From Lepidodermella squamata (lineage: Eukaryota > Animalia > Gastrotricha): a stretch of DNA of 64,000 bases. The stretch lies in NCBI GenBank assembly GCA_047495785.1, contig JBLDXI010000009.1:3844001-3908000 (forward strand), given 5' to 3'. The notes beneath the pieces were generated by a model that saw only the letters and a program-made list of their open reading frames with translations, searched no databases and was not told the origin of the DNA. A program made the translations under genes and the position numbers. Below are positions 1 through 12,735 of the stretch, one piece after another; the first letter of the stretch is position 1, and each line of letters opens with the position of its first letter.

Positions 1-1129
1 CTGTCCCAATGTATTAAATAGAAGCCCTCCGTTTCGATAGCTACTTTTTGCAGGAACCTGAGCTGTCGCTTGGAAAATAGGGCTACCATGAAAGGCACAA
101 CAGAAAAGGTCTGGATGTACTTGCACTCTTCAAGCACCCTCTTCTTATCTTCTTCGCTCAATTCCTCGAAATTGATGGGAACGATCGGGTCCTCAATATC
201 GACCTCCAGATGTTCTCGAATAATTTCAAGCAGCACGTCAATGAATGCGTCTTTATCTAGACGACCAGATAATCGTTTCAGCGACTTCGCTTTATGAATG
301 GTCTGCAAGTCAGGTACAGCAGTCTTGTTACCAGCCTGAAATATTTCCGACTCGCGCTGAATGCGCCTCTTCCTCGTCTCATCCATTGGTCCTTCAATAC
401 CAAAATTATTCAGCAAATTTTCATGATGCACCGTGACAGATTGGCCTCGCAACTTATCGAGCATTTCCGCCCTAGCGCTGCCTCTTAAAGGTCGAGCAAA
501 TTTTTCTGCTTCAGGATGGTTCTCTTTTGATTGAGAAACCAATTTGCCAACGTAAAAATCTTCAACCTTCGAACTTAAATCGACATCGAAGTCAAAGTTT
601 CTGCGGCAAGTCGGCGAATTGCAGTAAGCCTTTCCCTTCATGGTTTTACCATCTGTTGACTTGTTGCCGAAAGAAACACAAATAGCACATGTCAGTTCGC
701 CATTTTCATGAACTCGATCATAAAATAGCTTCGACCATCCTTTTTTCAGGCTTCTCGATTTGGGATCGACAATTCGGGCCTTATCCGCTTCCGTCAATTT
801 GAAATCGTAAACGAAAACTTCGGGTTCAGATACGCTACACGCAACTACGGGTAGTTCTTCGGGCCCGGAAAAATATTTGCCGTATTTGTCTTGATGATTT
901 TTGAAGCGTTGGTAAATTCTTGTTTTGGCTTCAAGGGAGTCATCATTAAACAATGCATTCGAGAGATCTGCATACGATTGATAACTCGGACCTAACGTAA
1001 ACATTACTGGTAAATAAATCATTTTCCTGTCCCGGGGAACACACCTGCACCTGGCGGAATCTTTTCATGCGTCAAAAAATAGTTTGAAATAATTCCGTCG
1101 TCGTAGATAAATTGAGTTTGACGGACCAT
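1..1129 (-). mobile_element. MULE/Mutator-like (NOF-FB type) transposase gene, 5' part; runs off the left edge
   Basis: ATG at 1129, exon 1129-1051 (or 1045), phase-1 intron, then a stop-free frame from 991 to base 1. Translation includes KAYCNSPTC, ARPLRGSARAEM and YIQTFSVVPFMVALFSKRQL...YLIHWD, resembling the region leading to the first catalytic Asp of NOF-type MULE transposases. Missing from the ORF track because no stop codon falls in the window. Confidence 0.7.
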
Positions 1130-3532
1130 TGAAACCTCAGCAAATAACGATTACACCAGGTATCCTAACACAGGGAGAAAATGCGTTATTTCATCTTTAT
1201 TTTCTTTCCTTCGAAAATTAATTTTCAGCAAGTGAAAAAACTACTACTCAGGAAAGGGAATATGTAGCACGAACGAACGTCGCTATTAGCCATATAGCGT
1301 AATATTTTATTGCAGATTTTTCGCTTGCAGTTTCCAGCGTCAATAAATCTCTTTGGAAGTGTACTTGAATAGATATGGCGAATAAAAGACGCCAGGGTAA
1401 TCAGCAGATGTAAGCGTCACGTCGGTATTATAACTTAGGTATAACCGAAGAACTTTTTTATATAAAACATTTCAAAACGATAACTTTTTGCAAATTTTTA
1501 CAGCAAATTATGTATCCTGGTTTCAGCAACATCGTTTCGCAAAAGAGAAGCTATTTAATTTCATAAAAAAAATTGTCAGCATTCGACAAAATTTGCAAGT
1601 TTAGTCTTGTATTTCTTCAGCACGATTGTGAGTCAGCAAATCCAATCGATGTCAGCATCCTCCATAGCTTCACTTCAAAGACACTTCTTACTGCCAAAAT
1701 TGCTGTAAATGATATCGAAATTCTGAACAGGTACATACAGTCTGGCTTGAACTTACCGGCTAGCAATCATTTCCATGTTCATACCTTGCCGTCATCTTGT
1801 AGATTGTAGATAGTAGACAGCGAAATTGAACTGGCTAATTTACTGAGACTGAGATACCCTACAAATCAAGCGCTAAATTTGAGCAGAGTAGTCAGGCGAA
1901 ACTCACCAACTGCCTCTTAGCGAAAAGTCGAGAACGCTATAGTTCCCTTTTGAGAGGTCAAAAGGCGCAGTAGGATAAAATGTGTCCTTTTAACTTTCAA
2001 CCAATCAGCAGCTCGAGCTACTTCAACTTCACTGCAGCTCGACAGAGGTTTTCAATTTGCTCGAACAAACTCCGAACCATTAAGACGATCTAAGACTTCA
2101 ATCCATACTGATGTACAACACGTTGCTTTATTTTCCAATCCGAACCCTTGACTCGAAAATCATCCCTCATGACACAGATTCTTCGGCGAAGAAACTAATT
2201 CTCCAAGCGTCCATGATTATGTCCGAGAAAGCGCCATTGATTAATTATTAAACAACATTCGAGAAGCCGACCCTAAGTAACAGCAAACGATGAAAATGCT
2301 ATCAATTTCTGATAATAGAAGTAATTCAAAAATAGGTTTATGGGACAGACCCAGAATTCAAAAAATTATCGTAGGCCCAAGCCTTTCATGAGATTGACAT
2401 CACGTTGTTTCGAGATTGTCTAAACATCGCAATCAAAGGTGCAGATTAGTTTTCCTGATCGGAAATCGGGTGCCTTGATCGGCCCTTGTAGGGAAAATTC
2501 GAAGCTTAAACTTTCATCTTAAAAAAGCAACAAAGTTCGAATGGTCAAGGCTGATCAGCAGGGTCATACGTAATAGAAAGCTAATTGTTTTGACTCATTT
2601 CTCTACATAACACAGCTTAACTTGTCAGCGCAGCTTACTCCACATGATAGTAAGCTCAACCTGATCAGCTGGTCTGATTTCAACTGTAGCAAGCTGAGCT
2701 AAAAGCTAACAATAGAGCGAATACACCGTGCGTACGAATTGCACGATCACGATCACGATCACGAATTAACCATTTCCCCTCGCCCGGACGGTCTCAACTT
2801 TCGCCATAAGGCAAGGCTAGTGAGATGACGCTCTATCTTGTTGCAACGCGCACGTGTAACAGGCCCCGCGCGAGCGTAATACATAATTAAATATAAATAT
2901 AAAAAAACATTCATCATCTACATGACGGCGAAATTTACATTATTATGATGTACTGCAAATTTTATTACCTTTCACTTCTCGAGGATAAATGAAAAATCAT
3001 TCTCCGGTAGCTGTCAGACAACGATGGGCCACCTGTAAAACGTGCATCTTTGCTCGAAAAAGGCCACCCAAGTGATGCTGATGAAAAAATGAAAAGCGCC
3101 ATCGTAATCAGCGTCATTTGTTACGTTACATAACAAATTCTCACGTTTGTTATGTGCTGCTGTCAGATATAACAAATGGGGTCCCAAATCGATGCACCCT
3201 TTTTACATTGTAAAACCTGAACTTAGCAGCAAAAGTTGGCAGCACGCCAACGGAAGGTGATGCAAATGTAATTTTTGTTTCTATCAACTAGTATTGGTCC
3301 ATAACAATCCATAACAAATGATGAGACTTCCAGGACAAGTGGAAGTTAGTGCTGATGAAAACACGCTGCCAGGTTCAAAGCGGTCGTGAAACGCAAGCGC
3401 CGAGCCGTTTTTCCGACGCTTTTTGCTTCTGGGAATTGTGATGTGGACTCGTTCAAAAATTTTGGCCGGGAGAGACAACTAAGTATGTTATTCAGAAAAT
3501 GGAGAATTGAGCTGGTAATCGACACAGTAGAT

Positions 3533-4026
3533 CAGTATGGTCCACGGTCTGAAAATCGCGAGTCACAAGCCAGAGTCAAAAATAGGCCAAAGAGTCAAAC
3601 CCATTAAAATGCCGAAAAACCAGTGAATATCACGTGTATAAATCACTTCAGTCGCTCTCTATTTTCACCAGTCGCTGCGACTTTTCGCGGGATTCGACTG
3701 GTTTTTCAACAAAATTCGATGTTTTTGCGCCTTTGCAACTTCAAAATAGCCACCTGCAATCGAAGCCAGTTTTAGCTAACGATCATATTTCTTCGTTTTT
3801 ATTGACCAGGAATATATTAGGGCGAGTGTAAATAAGTAGTGTGGAGTCAAAGACAGTTCCATTTGGAGTCAAATTCAGACCCGGAGCAGTCAGTTTCGAG
3901 TGATTGTCTGACTCGTTTCGGAGTCAAAAATATTTAGTATTATTATTAATAAATCGGAGTCAGTCATGAGTCAAAAAGTCTCAAAAGAGTCCAAATGACT
4001 CCGGAGTCAGCCCGTGGACCACACTG
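3533..4026. mobile_element. Non-autonomous hAT element (494 bp)
   Basis: TIRs CAGTATGGTCCACGG (3533-3547) and CCGTGGACCACACTG (4012-4026), 1 mismatch. Perfect 8-bp TSD CAGTAGAT at 3525-3532 and 4027-4034. Many subterminal GAGTCA/GAGTC motifs. Confidence 0.92.
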
Positions 4027-5025
4027 CAGTAGATCACGGTCAGAGATATTTGTAGCTCTCAGAAAAAAACGAACTTTCGACCCGACATATTCATCGAGCG
4101 CTACCTGATAATTGGCGTATTTAGCATGCGGATTTCACGAATGGTCTCTACGTATTACTAGATAGGTTCATGAAAATTAAACAAATTCAAGCCGATATGA
4201 TTGAACGCACCCTGGATCGGAGATCCGATGGTGAACCAATGTTTTGTTTGAATACCAAGCTTCAAATATTTAGAGGGCGAAAAAATAATTCATATTACAT
4301 GAAATTAATGATGTTAATTGAACGGCAACCATGACTAGGCTGTTTCTTGGAAAGACTCCTGCCTTTCCTCGCTGCCTTTCCTGCCTTGGTGTTCAAACAA
4401 TAATGCAGTGGCTGCGAGAAATCAGATCGGCAAGCATGAATCGTTATGCTATATTCCAGCAAAGGTATGATCCAGCTGAGAGCAATTCTGATATTTTGTT
4501 ATAACGGCAATGCGCGCTGAAATGCATCCCACACGCAGCCATAATAATATGAGAATTGTAAATCATCTGCCTTATTTTATGATGAACGATGATCAAGATT
4601 GGCAACTCGTAGCGTTCGCTTCTCTCAACTCTCAGTGTAGGAGGTGTGGTTAAATGTTCCTCAAAAACAGTAGAAACTGGCTGAAATATACCATCGTCTC
4701 GACGTTAGGGTTGTATCAATAATAAATGCAAGTTGAGCATAAATCGCTGTCTTATTTTTATTAAACGACACTATCGACCTACTGCGATACAGGAAATAAA
4801 AACAAACATTAGGCCTGTCACAAATATTTGTGCAACAACAATGCGTTCGCAAATTCCAATTATTTGGACCGATTTTAGAGCAATGATCAAGTTGAATTAT
4901 TCAAGCTAATCAATCCATTGAAGATATTCGACAATAAAGCAGTAGGTAGAAAATGCAACAGAGGTAGAGTTATAAAAATTAGCTAGATTGAATAGTCTGT
5001 TTGAGTGTTTCGGAAAGCGCTATTA

Positions 5026-5426
5026 TTACAACTCGGGACGTTCAGCCGGAGGCCAAGCTACTTTGCTGTAGTCGCGAGGTGACCAGAATTTGTACTGCCT
5101 GTTTGGAGCGAGTGCCTGCCATGGCTGTTCGCCGTGCTTGTGGCGCAAGCTGAAAAAAACCGATTGAAATTACCGGAAAATTATCAAACGAAATTGAACT
5201 TACATCACATCTGGGCTCTTCATTCCAAAGCGGACAAGATAGCCAGCGGACAGAGCAACGCCAAAAGCCGAGCATAAGCACAGGCCTCCCATCTGTGTTC
5301 AAAAATTGTATTGAGATTTCAGCAAATTTAGAAATATTGCCGATGAAAAATCCTTACCGTGAATGAGTGCATATTGCGCCGGACGGCGGAGCGCTGGAGT
5401 GAGGCGGGCAGCCACGATGCGAACAT
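5026..5426 (-). CDS. NDUFA4: NDUFA4/COXFA4-family cytochrome c oxidase subunit, divergent paralogue b (93 aa, 3 exons)
   Basis: join(5426-5358, 5292-5204, 5149-5026) with canonical GTAAG/CAG sites gives MFASWLPASLQRSAVRRNMHSFTMGGLCLCSAFGVALSAGYLVRFGMKSPDVILRHKHGEQPWQALAPNRQYKFWSPRDYSKVAWPPAERPEL. Carries the family motifs YLxR..PDV, PW, QYKF, DYSK, ERP. Confidence 0.9.
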
Positions 5427-5477
5427 TTCGAACCAAGTTAGAGCAGAAGTTTCCAAAATATCCAAATCTACATTTAA

Positions 5478-6337
5478 CCCTCTAAGTCCGGCGGGTGTAT
5501 GTGTAAGTCGCTTGGTGTTTTGGAAAGTTGCAAAAAAATGACAAAAATGTGTGTTACTATTGTAACTTTTAAAATTGCTTGTGTTAACACAAGTCTTAAA
5601 ATATTTTCAACAATTTTTTTCATTTTGACCAAAAATGCCATTTTTACATGTCGAAACACAAGTGATTCGATAGATTGCCGAATTTTTGGCTTGTCGAAAC
5701 ACAAGTGATCCATGAAGGTGATTGACAAAACTTTGATTTATCGATCAGGGTTAGTTGATAAATCAGTGGAACCTTGATAAACCGGCTGGTATTACAGTTA
5801 CTCACCCTAACTACGACCTATTGGCCCATGAAAATCTATATCGAATCGATGGCAATCGAATTTATCGGAATTGGGCCGACAAAATCACTTGATAACTTCT
5901 TTATCAAATGAAAAGTGGCTGTCACAAGGGTGCGTAAGCACCAGATGTTGCTGACAACACATTTATAAGCAGAGCTGCGCAACTAAATTTGGGGCCTTAA
6001 AAACAGTGATTAAATGGATCGCATGTGTTTCCGCATGTAAATTGGTTTCCAAAACACGTTCGTGTGTTCGAATGGCAATCAGAGCGACAAAAAAATGCCC
6101 CACATCGTGTGTGCACACATAATGGTACGTGTGTTTCGACGAGTTTAAGAGGCGAGGGACATTCACCTAATTACTGTGTTGCGTAATCGCACGTTGTGGA
6201 CGCGCCCGCCTGGGTGCTGAAAGCTCAGGTAAGGGGCTCAACCGTGGTATAAAAATTTTTAGCCGAAAATTAATAAGCAATCCACACCTACGCCGAGAAG
6301 TTGCAATTGACGAAAACCCATAGTCGGACTTAGAGGG
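5478..6337. mobile_element. piggyBac-type non-autonomous element (860 bp) in the 5' leader of NDUFA4-b
   Basis: Perfect 13-bp TIRs CCCTCTAAGTCCG (5478-5490) and CGGACTTAGAGGG (6325-6337), flanked by TTAA at 5474-5477 and 6338-6341. Confidence 0.9.
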
Positions 6338-6355
6338 TTAAAGCAAAGCGAAATC

Positions 6356-7023
6356 GAATGAGCGAAATGCGCGCATTACGGCGCTATATATAGGGGCTGA
6401 GTGTCCGAAATTAGGCCTGCGCTATACACTAAACAACAACAAACGCGGCCCGGCCGTCTTCACACTATTAAAGGCAACACGTGAACAGCACGCGCATTCT
6501 GGCTATTGCGCGGCTGCAGTGGCCGAAACTAGTTTATGGCTGTTTGCAGTATGGAGGAAGAGACATTCACGTGGTAAATGCGCGTCCTACTTTGGGACAA
6601 ATTTAGCCGCGGCCAAAATATTGCGCAACGAGATTTGCGTGCGCGTGTCGCAAAGTGGGCGAAACTGGAGCAAGATGTCATTCCACTAAAACGTTGAGCT
6701 GAATAAATTTATGAAAATTGCCAATATTTTTGCCAGATTCGCCTTCCGGCCTCACGTTGACTGGTAAATATAAGTATGGCGGAATATTGTTGCAGCGCCG
6801 TAACAGCCGTAACTGTTGAGCGATATTGTAGCTGATAAACCATATACGCTGGTTATCTAAATTTGCGGCATATCAGTCTTTGACCGGAACTTGAAGCGCC
6901 CTGTGGCAGCGGTTATCCAAACAGCCATGTAACTAGCAGCTCATGTTACTATTTGCATTGAATCTGCGAGGTACACGTTGCAGTCATGTTGGAGTGACTA
7001 AATCGATGGTAACATTAGGCGTG
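6356..7023 (-). promoter_or_regulatory. Putative NDUFA4-b promoter: TATA box, Inr and RCGTG/E-box cluster
   Basis: Minus strand TATATATAG (6392-6384) lies 31-33 nt upstream of a TCATTC initiator (A at 6359). Eight RCGTG sites at 6478 (CACGTG), 6489, 6568 (CACGTG), 6637, 6643, 6753, 6974 and 7019. Confidence 0.6.
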
Positions 7024-7192
7024 CAGTAGCTGCTCATTGCTATAAAGAATTCGCTTCCGCTGACGATATCCTCTTTGTCGCTAAGAGCTTACAAAATATT
7101 TCAGAATTTTTGGGTAAACATCACCCGACGCGATATCGAACGATGAAACTGCAATTTTGATCGAACACGAGCCTCGAGTTAGACCTTAAATA

Positions 7193-7415
7193 CTGTATAT
7201 CTACTAAATTTCGGTGGTCATTAATTTTCGGTTTGATCTTTGAATTCGGTGTTTTTGCGAAAATACCAAAATTAAAAACACCATTAAAATAACTATGTTT
7301 TTTCCTCAGCAGCCCACCTAAAACCGAATTCATATCCACCAAAAATAAGTTTACAGGCCCGAAATAATCTCCAAAACTGAAAATTAATGACCACCGAAAA
7401 TTAGTAGATATACAT
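7193..7415. mobile_element. Tc1/mariner/pogo-type MITE (223 bp)
   Basis: About 42-bp TIRs, CTGTATATCTACTAAATTTCGGTGGTCATTAATTTTCGGTTT versus its inverse with 3 mismatches, flanked by TA on both sides. Confidence 0.85.
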
Positions 7416-8966
7416 TAGGTAGCTATAATTGGCACCACGCCAACAAATTTCGAATTCAGCGCTTTTTTCTGCGTGGAAAAATTGCGCTGTAGGATAATGT
7501 TGAAAAGTTTAGAAATTAAATACCTATATGCTATCTTTATAATTCAAATGTGGCTTCTATCGGCTCTAGGAATTTGGGAAAGGAGCTACAAAATTTGCAA
7601 CTCAATTGGTTATCATGTCAATCTTTTAGCTGTTTAAGGAGCAGTAATATGGGCTAGTAATATGGGAGGCCCCTGAGCTTTCTCCAAATGGCGATCCTCA
7701 TTTCTCAATTTGAGCAATTTCCCAACATTTGTAGAACAGCATTTTCGAATACCCTTCTTCGTTTCATTATTTCTATGTCGGACGTTCGAAATTCTAAAAG
7801 ATATTTCCAAGGTGGCGTCTAAATTTATTGAGTTTCCTAATTCCTCAATTTTCCTAATAAGATCTTTCAAAAGCTAGGTAATATAAATAATATCTTCTTT
7901 TCATTTTTGGAAATTTTCGGCAATTTAATTTGAGCCGATTCTTAGAGCGATGCGAGGATTTTTTGGAGCAGTAAATTCGCACTACATTCCTTGCCGAAAC
8001 CAAAATTGACTGCGGCTCAATCTTAAACCACAGTTTTCGATTCCTTGAATAATTTAATATTACTAATTTATTGAATGGCCATTTACAGATGATAGTTTAT
8101 GAATGCATTCCGGTGACTGTCTGCCTCTGGACTACAGCCCTCCAAGTCCATGTATCAATACGGCCCTCTAGTAACCCTTGATTTTGGGAACTATTACCCT
8201 GGAATTAAAAAGTTAGGGGCGTGACAGGTCACGAGAATCGCCGCACGGAAGTCGGAATAAACACCAGATCCCTCAATTTTGATGCGATTTCGGGCGTTTT
8301 TCAAAGCTTGCCTCACTCGCAGCTATACTTATTAGTAGCTTTGATGCGACCAGCCCGACTTGTGAAATCGAAAATTACCCGTTTTTTTGCTTTCCTCTCC
8401 AGATTCAAACTCTTCAATTCGTCTGTTTCCATCTCTATCAAGAATCAAGACTGCGGTAAATTTAAAACCAGACTAATAGAAACCTTTTTTCCATAAAATT
8501 GACAATCTTTTGTCTCTTCTGCTCTTACACCGGTCGAACGCGAAAAATCCAGACACCAGACACATGACACATTTCATTACTCATGTTTGCAAAAAGACAG
8601 AAAAGTTGTACAGAAACCTTGTCTGCGTTTATTCACCTTTTTATCCATAATTATCAAGAGGCGGTGGCAAATATATTTATATAGCTCAGACGCTCATCTT
8701 TTAAAGCCGTCTTCAGAAGCCGCGTCATCGCTTCAGACTTCGAAAACCAACTAAAAGAGCGAAGAAAAACATATTTCGGTTCGGGACAAGCCGCTATAAA
8801 CGGTCACTAGAGTCGGTCAGGTAACAACGTGCTCTCGCTTTAAACCAGCATGTAAATCACAAGTAAGTACTATGATGTTATAGCAATCGTTATTTTACTA
8901 TATAAGATGATGATGACGAAAAGAGGGAAGTCCTTTTTTAGGCAGTGATGGTCCAATCGCGCGGAC

Positions 8967-9626
8967 TCATAGTAGCGTGCTCTTCGGGATGCGCTCGGTC
9001 GGAAAAGCTGGCACATTATTGGGATTGGGCGGTAGACCAGGTGAAAGTTCGGGAGCCTTGGGCGGGACGTAAGAGTCGACTGGTTTGGGGCGATTGGTTT
9101 CAACAACCCTTTTTTGCAGGTAATATCCGACCTAAAATGAAGACACCATGTAAAATTATGAAAAGCTTATAAAATCAACCTCAGAAATCATGTTTTCAAA
9201 TGTAGCGAGTTACTAATCGAATATCAAATCTTGGAGACTTACTGGAGGCCTAGGAAGATCCATTTTCTCTTCCATGCATGAGTTGAAAGCAGTTTGTTCC
9301 TTCCGACACGGATAGTTGCCAAAATAACGGCTACCGTGGTCGATGCACCGCGTGTAAGCGCTGAACTCAACGGCGCACTTTTGCTTGACCATGCCGTAGA
9401 ATTCGATGGCACATTCCGAAACTTTCTGACCGTAAGGCAGGCAGCGGCGAGGATCGTGCAACTCGCGTTTGCACAGCATATAATCGAGACACTGAGGCTC
9501 GCAGTACTTGCCAAAATGAGCAGCTCCGGCCATCAACGGCGCCGATGTGAGCTTTAAATCGAGTTTCCCATTCGTTGGATCGATTTCTTTCGGCGACGGC
9601 AGCCAATCTGCGTCCGTAAACGGCAT
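8967..9626 (-). CDS. NDUFA8: NADH dehydrogenase 1 alpha subcomplex subunit 8 (182 aa, 2 exons)
   Basis: join(9626-9243, 9131-8967). Four Cx9C-type pairs after LxLTSAPLMAGAAHFGKYC. Exon 2 (VGYYLQKRVVETNRPKP...) matches the NDUFA8 C-terminal region. Confidence 0.95.
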
Positions 9627-9919
9627 CTCTCTTAATTAAGGTGTCCTAAAATAAACAACACGATTTTTTCCATAAAATGTATTTATTTTTGAGGCCTTAG
9701 GCTTAATTATCTGCGATAATACCGGCTTGGTAGTAACTGCAACTACAGGTAGGTCAAGTTTGGTTCCAGAAAATGGAGTTAAACCGTCTTAGGAGTGAGT
9801 AAATCACTTATTCTCGTCTGATCGATTGGCGTCATCAAAAATTATTCGGTTTCAACAAATTAGTTTAACCCTGCAAAATGATGTTATGAACCAGCGGTTC
9901 AGTCAACTTGATTTTTTAT

Positions 9920-10297
9920 TTAGACTTGAGGGCGCTCAGCAGGCCAGGTAAGCTTAGAGTAATCGCGAGGCGACCAGAACTTGTATTGCCTGTTCGGGCC
10001 ATATTCGTGCCATGGCTCACCGCCGCGCTTGGCCCTGAAATATGAGAAAATGATACCATATAAAAAATAAATGATACGTTTTCTCCGAATATCTTACACG
10101 ACGTCGGGGCTCTTAGTGGCAAAGCGGAAAATGTAAGCTCCGCAAAGAACACCTCCAGCGCCAACGATGGCGAACAGTGGGAGGATCTGAAGTTCAAAGC
10201 TTTTGTGAATAGTATTCAAATTGGTAATTTAATTGCTTACGGCGACGTGCTTCTTGAGAGAGGCGAGGCGCAATGATTCCGGAAGTCCCAGCGTCAT
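9920..10297 (-). CDS. NDUFA4: NDUFA4/COXFA4 cytochrome c oxidase subunit, canonical paralogue a (86 aa, 3 exons)
   Basis: join(10297-10241, 10186-10098, 10034-9920) gives MTLGLPESLRLASLKKHVAILPLFAIVGAGGVLCGAYIFRFATKSPDVVAKRGGEPWHEYGPNRQYKFWSPRDYSKLTWPAERPQV. KKHxxxxPLF, PDV, EPW, QYKF motifs. Same intron phases and same 89-nt middle exon as paralogue b. Confidence 0.95.
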
Positions 10298-11273
10298 TTT
10301 ATAAAATTTACAAGTATACTAGAAACAAGAAATTATTGCAAATGAAAATAATGTCCACAGAATAACGGATCCAATATCAACCGCTGTATCGTCAAATAAA
10401 CTATAAGCTGAGATCTGAATAATAATAATAATTTAGCGATGTGAAATGTGAATTAACAGATTAAATGCTATTAATAACTTATGTGCCACGCCAAAGATCA
10501 GCGGAATTAAAACATGTCGTTATTGCTTATTGCTCATAAAAGTGCTGGGGTATGCATGAAACCCAGGAGTCATCTCGTATCGCCGTCGCTGTTCGCAGTT
10601 CATGATGATTGGTAGCTCAGCTGGACTTGATCAGTTCAGAATAGCGAATCCAAGAAATCTAACTTAACAGTAATTTTAAGATACCCGCGGACCGATATGA
10701 TCCCCAAAGATGACGAATATCAACCGTTTTCAAAGATGATGGCAGGATCGGCCTCGTCTCAAAAAGTGTCAAGTGCCAGATTAATGCAAAATTTTAGCGT
10801 GGAACCGCGATAGATGTACAGTGCCAAGGGTGTAGTTCACTGTGCCTTCATGAAATCCATAACACCCGCGGGGCACTTGCATTTTTTGGAGCCCAGTGAA
10901 AAATAAAAATTTGTTCCTTTTATAATATGACCGAATTTATCTAACTCGAACTGAAAATTTAAATTGCCTGATTTTCCTTACCAAGACACCGTCACGTTTT
11001 CAAAAATAATAAAAAAACGTCCTTCATCTGCGACCGCGCACCCACACTTCAGGCCACCCACCTCGAGTTGAACGAAGGCTCTTCAACGCAAAAAATGCTG
11101 CAAAAACTATGGCATGGAATTCAGGCCGTTTACCTGTGTCCCTGATAGGCTAATTTCTTGATATTTGTGTGGATTTTAGAGAATATTACGATTTTTAGTT
11201 CCATTTTTTCAATGACATCTTTTACTTTTTGGGACATTTCTTAGATAACTTTTGAAGTTATATCATCCTGGAG

Positions 11274-12735
11274 ATGAGCTCTCACGATTCTGATTCTGAG
11301 AATGAGGAGGAGCCCACCATCGCCTCCGATGCGGTCGTGACCAAGTATAAAATGGCCGGAGACATCGTCAACGGTGAAATGATCTAGCTTTGATAATCGC
11401 GTTGTCTTAACTTGATTATGCAGGCATTCTGAAGAAAGTTGTTGAGCGATGTGTTGTCGGAGCTCATGCAAGCGAAATCTGCGAATTTGGAGACAACCTA
11501 CTTGCTGAAGAATTTGGTAAAGTTTACAAAAAGGACAAGGAAATGCTAAAAGGTAAGCATCTTATTGTAATAGATGGAGATTTAATTCCAAGAATTGTTT
11601 TTTTTTCAGGCATTGCTTTTCCAACTTGCATCTCCGTGAATAACTGCATTTGCCATTTCTCGCCCCTACGTGGCCAGACTGATTACACACTGGTTGAAGA
11701 CGATGTCGTGAAAATGTAGGTTTTACTTTGTTGACCAAATCGACTTATTATTTTCTTTTTGACAGTGAATTGGGCGGTCATATCGATGGCTTTGCTGCCC
11801 TTGTTGGCCACACCATTGTTGTTGGTGCCAGCAAAGAGCACCCCATTACTGGACGTCGCGCTGATGTCTTACTTGCGGCGCATCACTGTGCGGAGGCTGC
11901 CTTGCGCTTGATCAAGGCTGGTGGAAAGGACATTCAGGTCACCGAAGCTTGCCAGAAAATCACCTCAGCATTCAACTGCAATCCCGTCGAAGGTATTACG
12001 TCATTCCAGATTAACCAGCATGAAATCGAGGGAGAGAAGTACATCATCCTGAACCCCACCGAGGGTCAGAGGTTCGTTTTCTTCTATTGTATGAGGAATG
12101 GGATAATTCCACGATACGTTCTGTAGGAAAGATCACAGGCGTAGCGAATTTGAACAGCATGAAGTTTACGCCGTTGACTGCTTAATCACATCGGGCGAGG
12201 GCAAGTCTCGCCGCGAGGACACTCGGACCAATGTCTTCCGTCACAAAGAGGGCCTTAACTATCAGTTAAAGATGAAAGCTTCCAGACGTATGTATTTTTA
12301 ATAACGGAATTTGATCATCTATGGAGTTTGCTCTAAATAGAATTCTTTGCTGAGGTCGACAAGCGTTTTGGCAATATGGCCTTTTCTCTGCGTGCTTTTG
12401 AGGATGAAAAGAAGGCGCGCGTCGGTGTGATGGAATCAGTTAAACACGACCTGCTGTTGCCTTATGATGTCTTGTACGAAAAGGAGGGCGAATTCGTTGC
12501 CCAGTTTAAATTCACCGTCCTTTTGATGCCCAGCGGGCCTCTTCGGATTACTGGTCTCCCGGTCGACACTACCCTCTGCCAGTCCGGTTTCCAGGTCGAG
12601 GATCCCGACGTGAAGACGCTGCTGGCTCAACCTGTCAGTCTTCGCACTGTTGCGAAGAAGAACAAGAAAAAGAAGAAGAAGGAAGCTGCTGCTGGAGGTG
12701 CTGAGGTGAAGAGCGCAGCTGCTGCGGTTGTCTAA
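11274..12735 (+). CDS. PA2G4: Proliferation-associated protein 2G4 / EBP1 (6 exons)
   Basis: join(11274-11373, 11424-11552, 11610-11715, 11766-12071, 12127-12287, 12341-12735). Motifs [61 protein letters not shown] and a Lys-rich tail. Confidence 0.97.

Follow-up and report, generated by a model that had tools for sequence, protein, structure and literature searches.

An old COXFA4/NDUFA4 duplicate that may serve as a separately regulated isoform in the gastrotrich Lepidodermella squamata

Results

A 64,000-nucleotide stretch of the Lepidodermella squamata genome (contig JBLDXI010000009.1, positions 3,844,001 to 3,908,000; hereafter the window, with position 1 as its first letter) carries two genes of the COXFA4/NDUFA4 family, here called copy a and copy b, 4.5 kb apart on the minus strand. 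An initial annotation of the window had presented copy b as a candidate hypoxia- or stress-inducible subunit of cytochrome c oxidase. Our analysis leans, by a modest degree, toward copy b being an old and selectively maintained paralogue of copy a that is expressed as a separately regulated isoform. The evidence comes from the gene models, from contigs of three RNA-type runs from three studies (X1, X2 and X4; X2 derives from a relative about 2% divergent), and from a DNA run of another genome (X3).

Both genes are intact members of the NDUFA4 family

The exons and untranslated regions (UTRs) of the two genes are as follows, all on the minus strand.

5358-5426, copy b exon 1: ATG at 5426-5424, 23 codons; from direct reading and from X1, X2 and X4 contigs that join 5358 to 5292.
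5204-5292, copy b exon 2: 89 nt, encoding the transmembrane helix and KSPDV; Pfam B12D match; joints 5292/5358 and 5149/5204 in three runs.
5026-5149, copy b exon 3 and stop: coding 5029-5149, stop codon 5026-5028; matches NDUFA4 chains and contains NRQYKFWSPRDYSK.
4740-5025, copy b 3′UTR: lower end approximate; AATAAA about 263 nt past the stop codon; an X1 contig extends past 4900 by 106 nt or more.
5427-5473, copy b proximal 5′UTR, between the ATG and a transposable element described below: an X2 contig is unbroken from exon 1 to 5459.
9920-10297, copy a: exons 10241-10297, 10098-10186 and 9923-10034, stop codon 9920-9922; the abundant housekeeping copy.

The claim of two intact three-exon NDUFA4 genes was borne out by the agreement of exon models, splice sites, Pfam matches and structure matches. 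All four introns of the two genes are of the GT..AG type and 54-65 nt long, with phases 0 and 2 in either gene, and the middle exon measures 89 nt in both. Summing of the exons gave products of 86 aa for copy a and 93 aa for copy b. Single exons were used as queries in the family and structure searches. Exon 2 of copy a matched Pfam B12D/MLRQ (PF06522) with 33.6 bits (E 2.5e-8; cut-off 21.5), and exon 2 of copy b, scored as a 29-aa piece, reached 18.2 bits (E 1.6e-3) against the same cut-off. In a search of solved structures, exon 3 of copy a matched the NDUFA4 chain 5z62_N (E 3.3e-5) and exon 3 of copy b matched the NDUFA4 chains 9w2z_N and 5z62_N (E 5e-4 to 7e-4); the significant matches of both third exons were chains named ‘Cytochrome c oxidase subunit NDUFA4’ only. 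A single hydrophobic helix opens exon 2 of each gene, with a mean hydropathy over its first 20 residues of 2.11 in copy a and 1.71 in copy b. The peptides quoted in the annotation, including the motif NRQYKFWSPRDYSK common to the two proteins, are exact. Judged by these sequence matches, copies a and b are beyond doubt members of the NDUFA4/COXFA4 family.

Copy b is an old duplicate under purifying selection

Alignment of the two proteins over 85 positions gives 41 identities (48%), distributed as 5 of 19 in exon 1, 11 of 29 in exon 2 and 25 of 37 in exon 3. This distribution supports the earlier description of copy b as having a rewritten N-terminus and transmembrane start with a conserved C-terminus, and indeed the IPLF-type helix start is absent from copy b. 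Its predicted protein nevertheless keeps the C-terminal EPW...NRQYKFWSPRDYSK...ERP segment along with the transmembrane helix and the KSPDV turn, and would most likely occupy the slot of copy a on cytochrome c oxidase as an alternative isoform. The low identity of the first two exons and the loss of the helix start could instead mean that the protein has left complex IV for another role as a small mitochondrial membrane protein. We regard this as very improbable, for the best-conserved segment aligns to solved NDUFA4 chains and includes a run of 14 residues in which the two copies do not differ.

Synonymous sites between the two copies are saturated (pS 0.70, dS about 2 or more, against a dN of 0.44), and the duplication is therefore old rather than recent, with no recent gene conversion. 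Even within the identical 14-residue motif, six codons differ synonymously between the copies, one of them as TCT versus AGC. Since dN lies far below dS and the reading frames are intact, both copies are under purifying selection. No DNA-level alignment of the two loci was found outside the exons, so that the two promoters are not shared relics of the duplication. The initial annotation had deduced a local duplication from the shared motif; copy b does duplicate copy a, but the event was ancient.

Comparison with the X3 genome was consistent with constraint on copy b. Eighteen differences from the window were counted in the 901 bp upstream of the gene. At the intergenic rate 5.6 differences would be expected in its 282-nt coding sequence, where at most one was found (P 0.024), and the differences listed within the gene fall in introns. 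The proximal promoter held 3 differences in 332 bp compared with 15 in 565 bp, which is a trend only (Fisher P 0.086).

Low and variable transcription of copy b

The contig joints 5149/5204 and 5292/5358 coincide exactly with the predicted introns of copy b in X1, X2 and X4, the transcript being spliced in the divergent relative X2 as well. A copy b that was not transcribed would have undone the proposal of the annotation; both of its introns were found removed in all three studies. The copy a joints 10186/10241 and 10033/10097 were seen in the same runs, as was removal of the intron of the NDUFA8-like gene. Contig depth, which is a rough guide to expression only, was 25 for copy b, 2,800 or more for copy a and about 1,000-2,000 for the NDUFA8-like gene that lies between them in X1; the corresponding depths were 3.6, 122 and 24 in X4, and 3.3, 7.1 and 3.6 in X2. 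At its joints the depth of copy a was 20 to 700 times that of copy b in X1 and X4, and the depth of copy b relative to the NDUFA8-like gene ranged from about 2.5% to 90% across the runs. Copy b is a transcribed, spliced minor transcript whose share differs between samples.

In the deepest RNA-type run no RNA depth was found between 6583 and 8452 except over a second repeat, so that simple read-through from the upstream NDUFA8-like gene does not account for the copy b transcript.

The two copies are found in contrasting promoter contexts

The features that distinguish the 5′ ends of the two genes are listed below, all on the minus strand.

10319-10320, trans-splice acceptor AG of copy a: loose letters TAGACACAAAT (plus strand) stand behind 10320 in X1.
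9646-9664, junction between the 3′ end of copy a and the leader acceptor of the NDUFA8-like gene: poly(A) site at 9664, acceptor at 9647/9646; in X4 a T-run precedes 9664, and leader letters stand behind 9647.
8609-9626, NDUFA8-like gene: ATG at 9626, intron 9132-9242, joint 9129/9241 (cut +2), contigs down to 8609.
6356-6392, core promoter of copy b: TATATATA at 6392-6385 and the initiator TCATTC at 6361-6356, with A+1 at 6359.

A leader tail reading ...ATTTGTGTCTA in RNA sense, followed by AG, precedes the acceptors at 10320 and 9647, and the same was seen in X2. Only 17 nt separate the poly(A) site of copy a from the acceptor of the NDUFA8-like gene. Because both genes receive the same leader across so short a gap, they look like a spliced-leader operon made up of two respiratory-chain subunit genes. 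The name NDUFA8 is a reading of the translated sequence; the Pfam matches of this gene were of the CHCH/CX9C type, all below the cut-offs for the piece tested. Copy b stands alone about 3 kb downstream of the operon-like pair.

Counted from the initiator A (6359), the TATA element of copy b lies at -33/-31. Over the two strands of the window taken together (128 kb), the combination TATAWAW-N19-25-TCAKTY has two matches against 0.39 expected, and the one described here is on the strand of copy b. The correctly spaced TATA and TCATTC reported earlier are therefore present and above chance, but in the assembly they stand 933 nt from the ATG, an intervening miniature inverted-repeat transposable element (MITE) having been missed. 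With the MITE removed the distance from initiator to ATG is 69 nt, which is ordinary promoter geometry.

We envisage copy a as a leader-spliced, operon-like and abundant transcript, whereas copy b would be driven at a low and variable level by a TATA/initiator promoter with a proximal block of E-boxes and AWTGCGCR motifs. This contrast between an operon copy and a TATA/initiator copy is the best argument for separate regulation of copy b.

A polymorphic MITE occupies the 5′UTR of copy b

5474-6341, piggyBac-type MITE (no strand assigned): the element itself spans 5478-6337 (860 bp), with TTAA on either side, in the 5′UTR of copy b.

The ends of the element are 18-nt perfect inverted repeats including TTAA, and the terminal inverted repeat CCCTCTAAGTCCG adjoins the TTAA. 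No open reading frame above 84 aa was found in it. In X3 its depth was 580-1900 compared with about 110 in the flanks (5-17 times), and copies with foreign flanks were present in X1 and X4 contigs. It is a non-autonomous, multi-copy, piggyBac-type MITE. In X3 a contig connects 5473 directly to 6338, so that 864 nt are left out, and the four letters TTAA are common to both sides of the joint; because this is an exact empty site, the insertion is polymorphic. The TTAA duplication, the CCC...GGG ends, the lack of a transposase frame, the multiple copies and the empty site with a single TTAA are all shared with other MITEs of the piggyBac superfamily. Nothing about the element is unusual, and its significance would come only from its position in the 5′UTR of copy b.

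The insertion lies at about +19 to +22 relative to the predicted start. By landing there, the roughly 860-bp element would have lengthened the 5′UTR from 69 to 933 nt, and the UTR with the MITE holds 13 upstream ATGs. The MITE allele is probably weakened, unless trans-splicing adds a leader at a site 3′ of the element. Contigs that contain exon 1 of copy b extend no further than 5459.

A copy b that is redundant, weak and heading for loss, with the MITE as an early step of decay, would fit the long 5′UTR of the reference allele and its upstream ATGs, the low depth of the transcript and the exon 2 score below the Pfam cut-off as a piece. Decay is nonetheless improbable in view of a frame, splice sites and intron phases that have stayed intact while synonymous sites became saturated, a dN far below dS and a coding sequence at most one difference away from that of the X3 genome. 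Splicing of copy b in three studies, the divergent X2 among them, and the absence of the MITE from X3 also count against it.

Two minor observations concern the edges of the element. A minimal upstream frame, ATG-TAG, out of frame with copy b, is located at 5468-5473 (minus strand), directly at the TTAA site into which the MITE inserted. In X1 a contig of low depth (6341-6513) links the MITE end at 6341 with opposite-strand sequence at 6451 and carries the X3-type variant at 6488; it may be an assembly chimera or come from another locus.

Motif content upstream of copy b

6478-7023, RCGTG cluster (no strand assigned): eight distinct sites in 546 bp.
6366-6647, proximal motif block (no strand assigned): six AWTGCGCR (6366, 6370, 6491, 6505, 6577 and 6620) and two CACGTG (6478 and 6568).

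The counts on which the hypoxia proposal was built were reproduced. Eight distinct RCGTG cores were counted in 6478-7023, as against the eight reported in about 550 bp; the inverted pair ACGTG-N5-CACGC was located at 6479-6493; and three cores were counted in 10298-11200, matching the approximately three reported upstream of copy a. The cluster is the maximum for any 550-bp span within the window. In dinucleotide-preserving shuffles of the stretch 3.1-3.9 cores were expected compared with the 8 observed, an excess of about twofold (P only 0.008-0.026, with the boundaries of the stretch set post hoc). CpG is not depleted in the genome (observed/expected 1.24) and is somewhat enriched in the stretch, and local composition accounts for about half of the RCGTG count.

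By type, two of the sites are palindromic CACGTG (6478 and 6568), two are the tails of AWTGCGCG/GTGCGCG (6489 and 6643), and the others are AACGTG, TGCGTG and GGCGTG. None of the eight is TACGTG, the only nearby example of which (6126) lies inside the MITE. As hypoxia elements the sites are of poor quality. CACGTG is the classic E-box of the Myc/Max/USF/TFE type, and AhR/ARNT, Sim and further bHLH-PAS factors likewise recognize the RCGTG core. In the X3 allele none of the eight sites has changed, which is uninformative given that only about one change would be expected.

What stands out more in the proximal 300 bp is the AWTGCGCR repeat. Six of the window’s 16 matches to this motif fall within 6366-6627 (262 bp), one pair of them forming a palindrome between TATA and initiator, and the most enriched 5-mer was GCGCA (9 versus 0.9 expected). 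AWTGCGCR resembles half of an NRF-1/Ewg-type site, a resemblance that we take as a lead only. A separate candidate, that the CpG-rich block upstream of copy b is a known RNA gene, was ruled out by an Rfam scan of 4000-12000, which returned one chance-level match, inside the MITE.

The inference of HIF or hypoxia control from the cluster was not supported: it is a motif count of which about half is compositional, with two E-boxes and two sites belonging to another motif. It is unlikely, in our estimate, that copy b is a HIF-driven, hypoxia-inducible isoform acting through these sites, as an independent analogue of the NDUFA4 to NDUFA4L2 switch. What speaks for this reading is the density of the cluster, a TATA-type promoter apart from the housekeeping operon, as would suit a regulated gene, a ratio of copy b to copy a depth that varies between samples, and the example of mammals, in which NDUFA4 is replaced under stress (PMC7793259). 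Set against these are the missing TACGTG, the assignment of four of the sites to E-boxes and to AWTGCGCG/GTGCGCG, the post hoc boundaries and a core that is not HIF-specific. HIF is one candidate trigger of copy b, to which nothing found here lends specific support.

Discussion

Relation to known isoforms and duplicates

In the vertebrate circuit termed MISTR, which has been called vertebrate-specific, NDUFA4 is replaced by NDUFA4L2 in hypoxia or by C15orf48 upon interferon or inflammation (PMC7793259). Homologues of the NDUFA4 and C15orf48 types have been found in protostomes, those of the NDUFA4L2 type have not (PMC7793259). The mammalian NDUFA4/NDUFA4L2/C15orf48 set resembles the two genes described here in comprising the same small single-helix family, with one abundant housekeeping copy and a divergent copy under separate transcriptional control. 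Copy b differs from mammalian NDUFA4L2 in being a duplicate of its own lineage’s NDUFA4 that keeps the QYKF...DYSK segment. The 14-residue motif common to copies a and b differs from the human one, and among database proteins of 31-99 aa none was found that shares three 5-residue words with the 57-aa open frame holding exon 3 of copy a. Orthology of copy b to NDUFA4L2 was rejected on these grounds and on the reported absence of that type from protostomes. Because the two copies share a lineage-specific version of the QYKF...DYSK segment, copy b is a duplicate within its own lineage, not an orthologue of a vertebrate isoform.

Duplicated genes of oxidative phosphorylation (OXPHOS) in insects offer a closer parallel. 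In 214 of 215 cases the housekeeping NRG element is present in no more than one of the paralogs, and changed expression, for example testis-specific, has been suggested to help fix such duplicates (PMC2241641). Their expression is restricted, often of testis type, and they resemble copy b in having arisen as DNA-level copies with introns, in having lost the parental regulatory context, in low expression and in a faster-evolving protein (PMC2241641, PMC551531, PMC2995371). Unlike the insect cases, the parental copy here belongs to a leader-trans-spliced, operon-like pair with NDUFA8. By analogy, the insect precedent is the strongest prior for copy b. Respiratory-chain duplicates usually end up as a housekeeping gene and a partner confined to particular tissues, stages, sexes or conditions, and the latter is the most likely role of copy b.

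Complex IV also offers oxygen-regulated isoform pairs, namely yeast Cox5a/Cox5b and mammalian COX4-1/COX4-2. The idea is the same, in that a small nuclear-encoded subunit is exchanged to tune cytochrome c oxidase, and the subunit is a different one here.

A more specific form of our preferred reading is that copy b is restricted to the germline, one sex or one stage, for example the male germline. This is a tentative proposal that we hold to be plausible and still doubtful. It draws on the insect precedent of a single NRG-bearing paralog, on the low depth of copy b in whole-animal-type runs, on a promoter architecture very unlike that of copy a, and on an N-terminus that diverged fast around a conserved core. 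The precedent comes from insects, however.

Weighing a separately regulated isoform

Several points weigh against reading copy b as a maintained and separately regulated isoform of complex IV. The TATA/initiator would be its start site on the grounds of geometry alone. Membership of the copy b protein in complex IV is an inference. The proximal motif block was picked out after the fact and in a single promoter. The depth comparison comes from runs unlabelled as to condition, tissue or sex, contig depth is a poor gauge of expression, and the existence of a MITE allele could mean that copy b is dispensable.

A fuller scheme would make this locus an independent complex IV subunit switch: COXFA4 locked in an operon, and an old duplicate with a rewritten matrix-side end, placed behind a TATA/E-box promoter and used under low oxygen or another stress, the segregating MITE giving weak and strong alleles. 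We consider the whole of this scheme improbable. As it stands, copy b reads as an ordinary OXPHOS gene duplicate with diverged regulation, and the hypoxia claim as a motif count. Interest is modest unless expression data reveal a stress response of copy b. Were it true that copy b exchanges with copy a on cytochrome c oxidase, the NDUFA4 isoform exchange, worked out so far only in vertebrates, would have arisen a second time independently. The locus is a convenient one, with two copies 4.5 kb apart, contrasting modes of expression and a natural insertion polymorphism in the 5′UTR of the regulated copy.

Other features of the region

No seed site of the miR-210 type was found in the 3′UTRs of copies a and b. 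Divergently from copy a, a gene read from its translation as PA2G4/EBP1-like occupies about 11270-12500 on the plus strand, the two having an intergenic region of about 950 bp in common in which no TATA/initiator match was found. A second short MITE-like element, with inverted ends of about 40 nt and variants with internal deletions, lies at about 7190-7430 and showed a 20- to 30-fold depth excess in X3.

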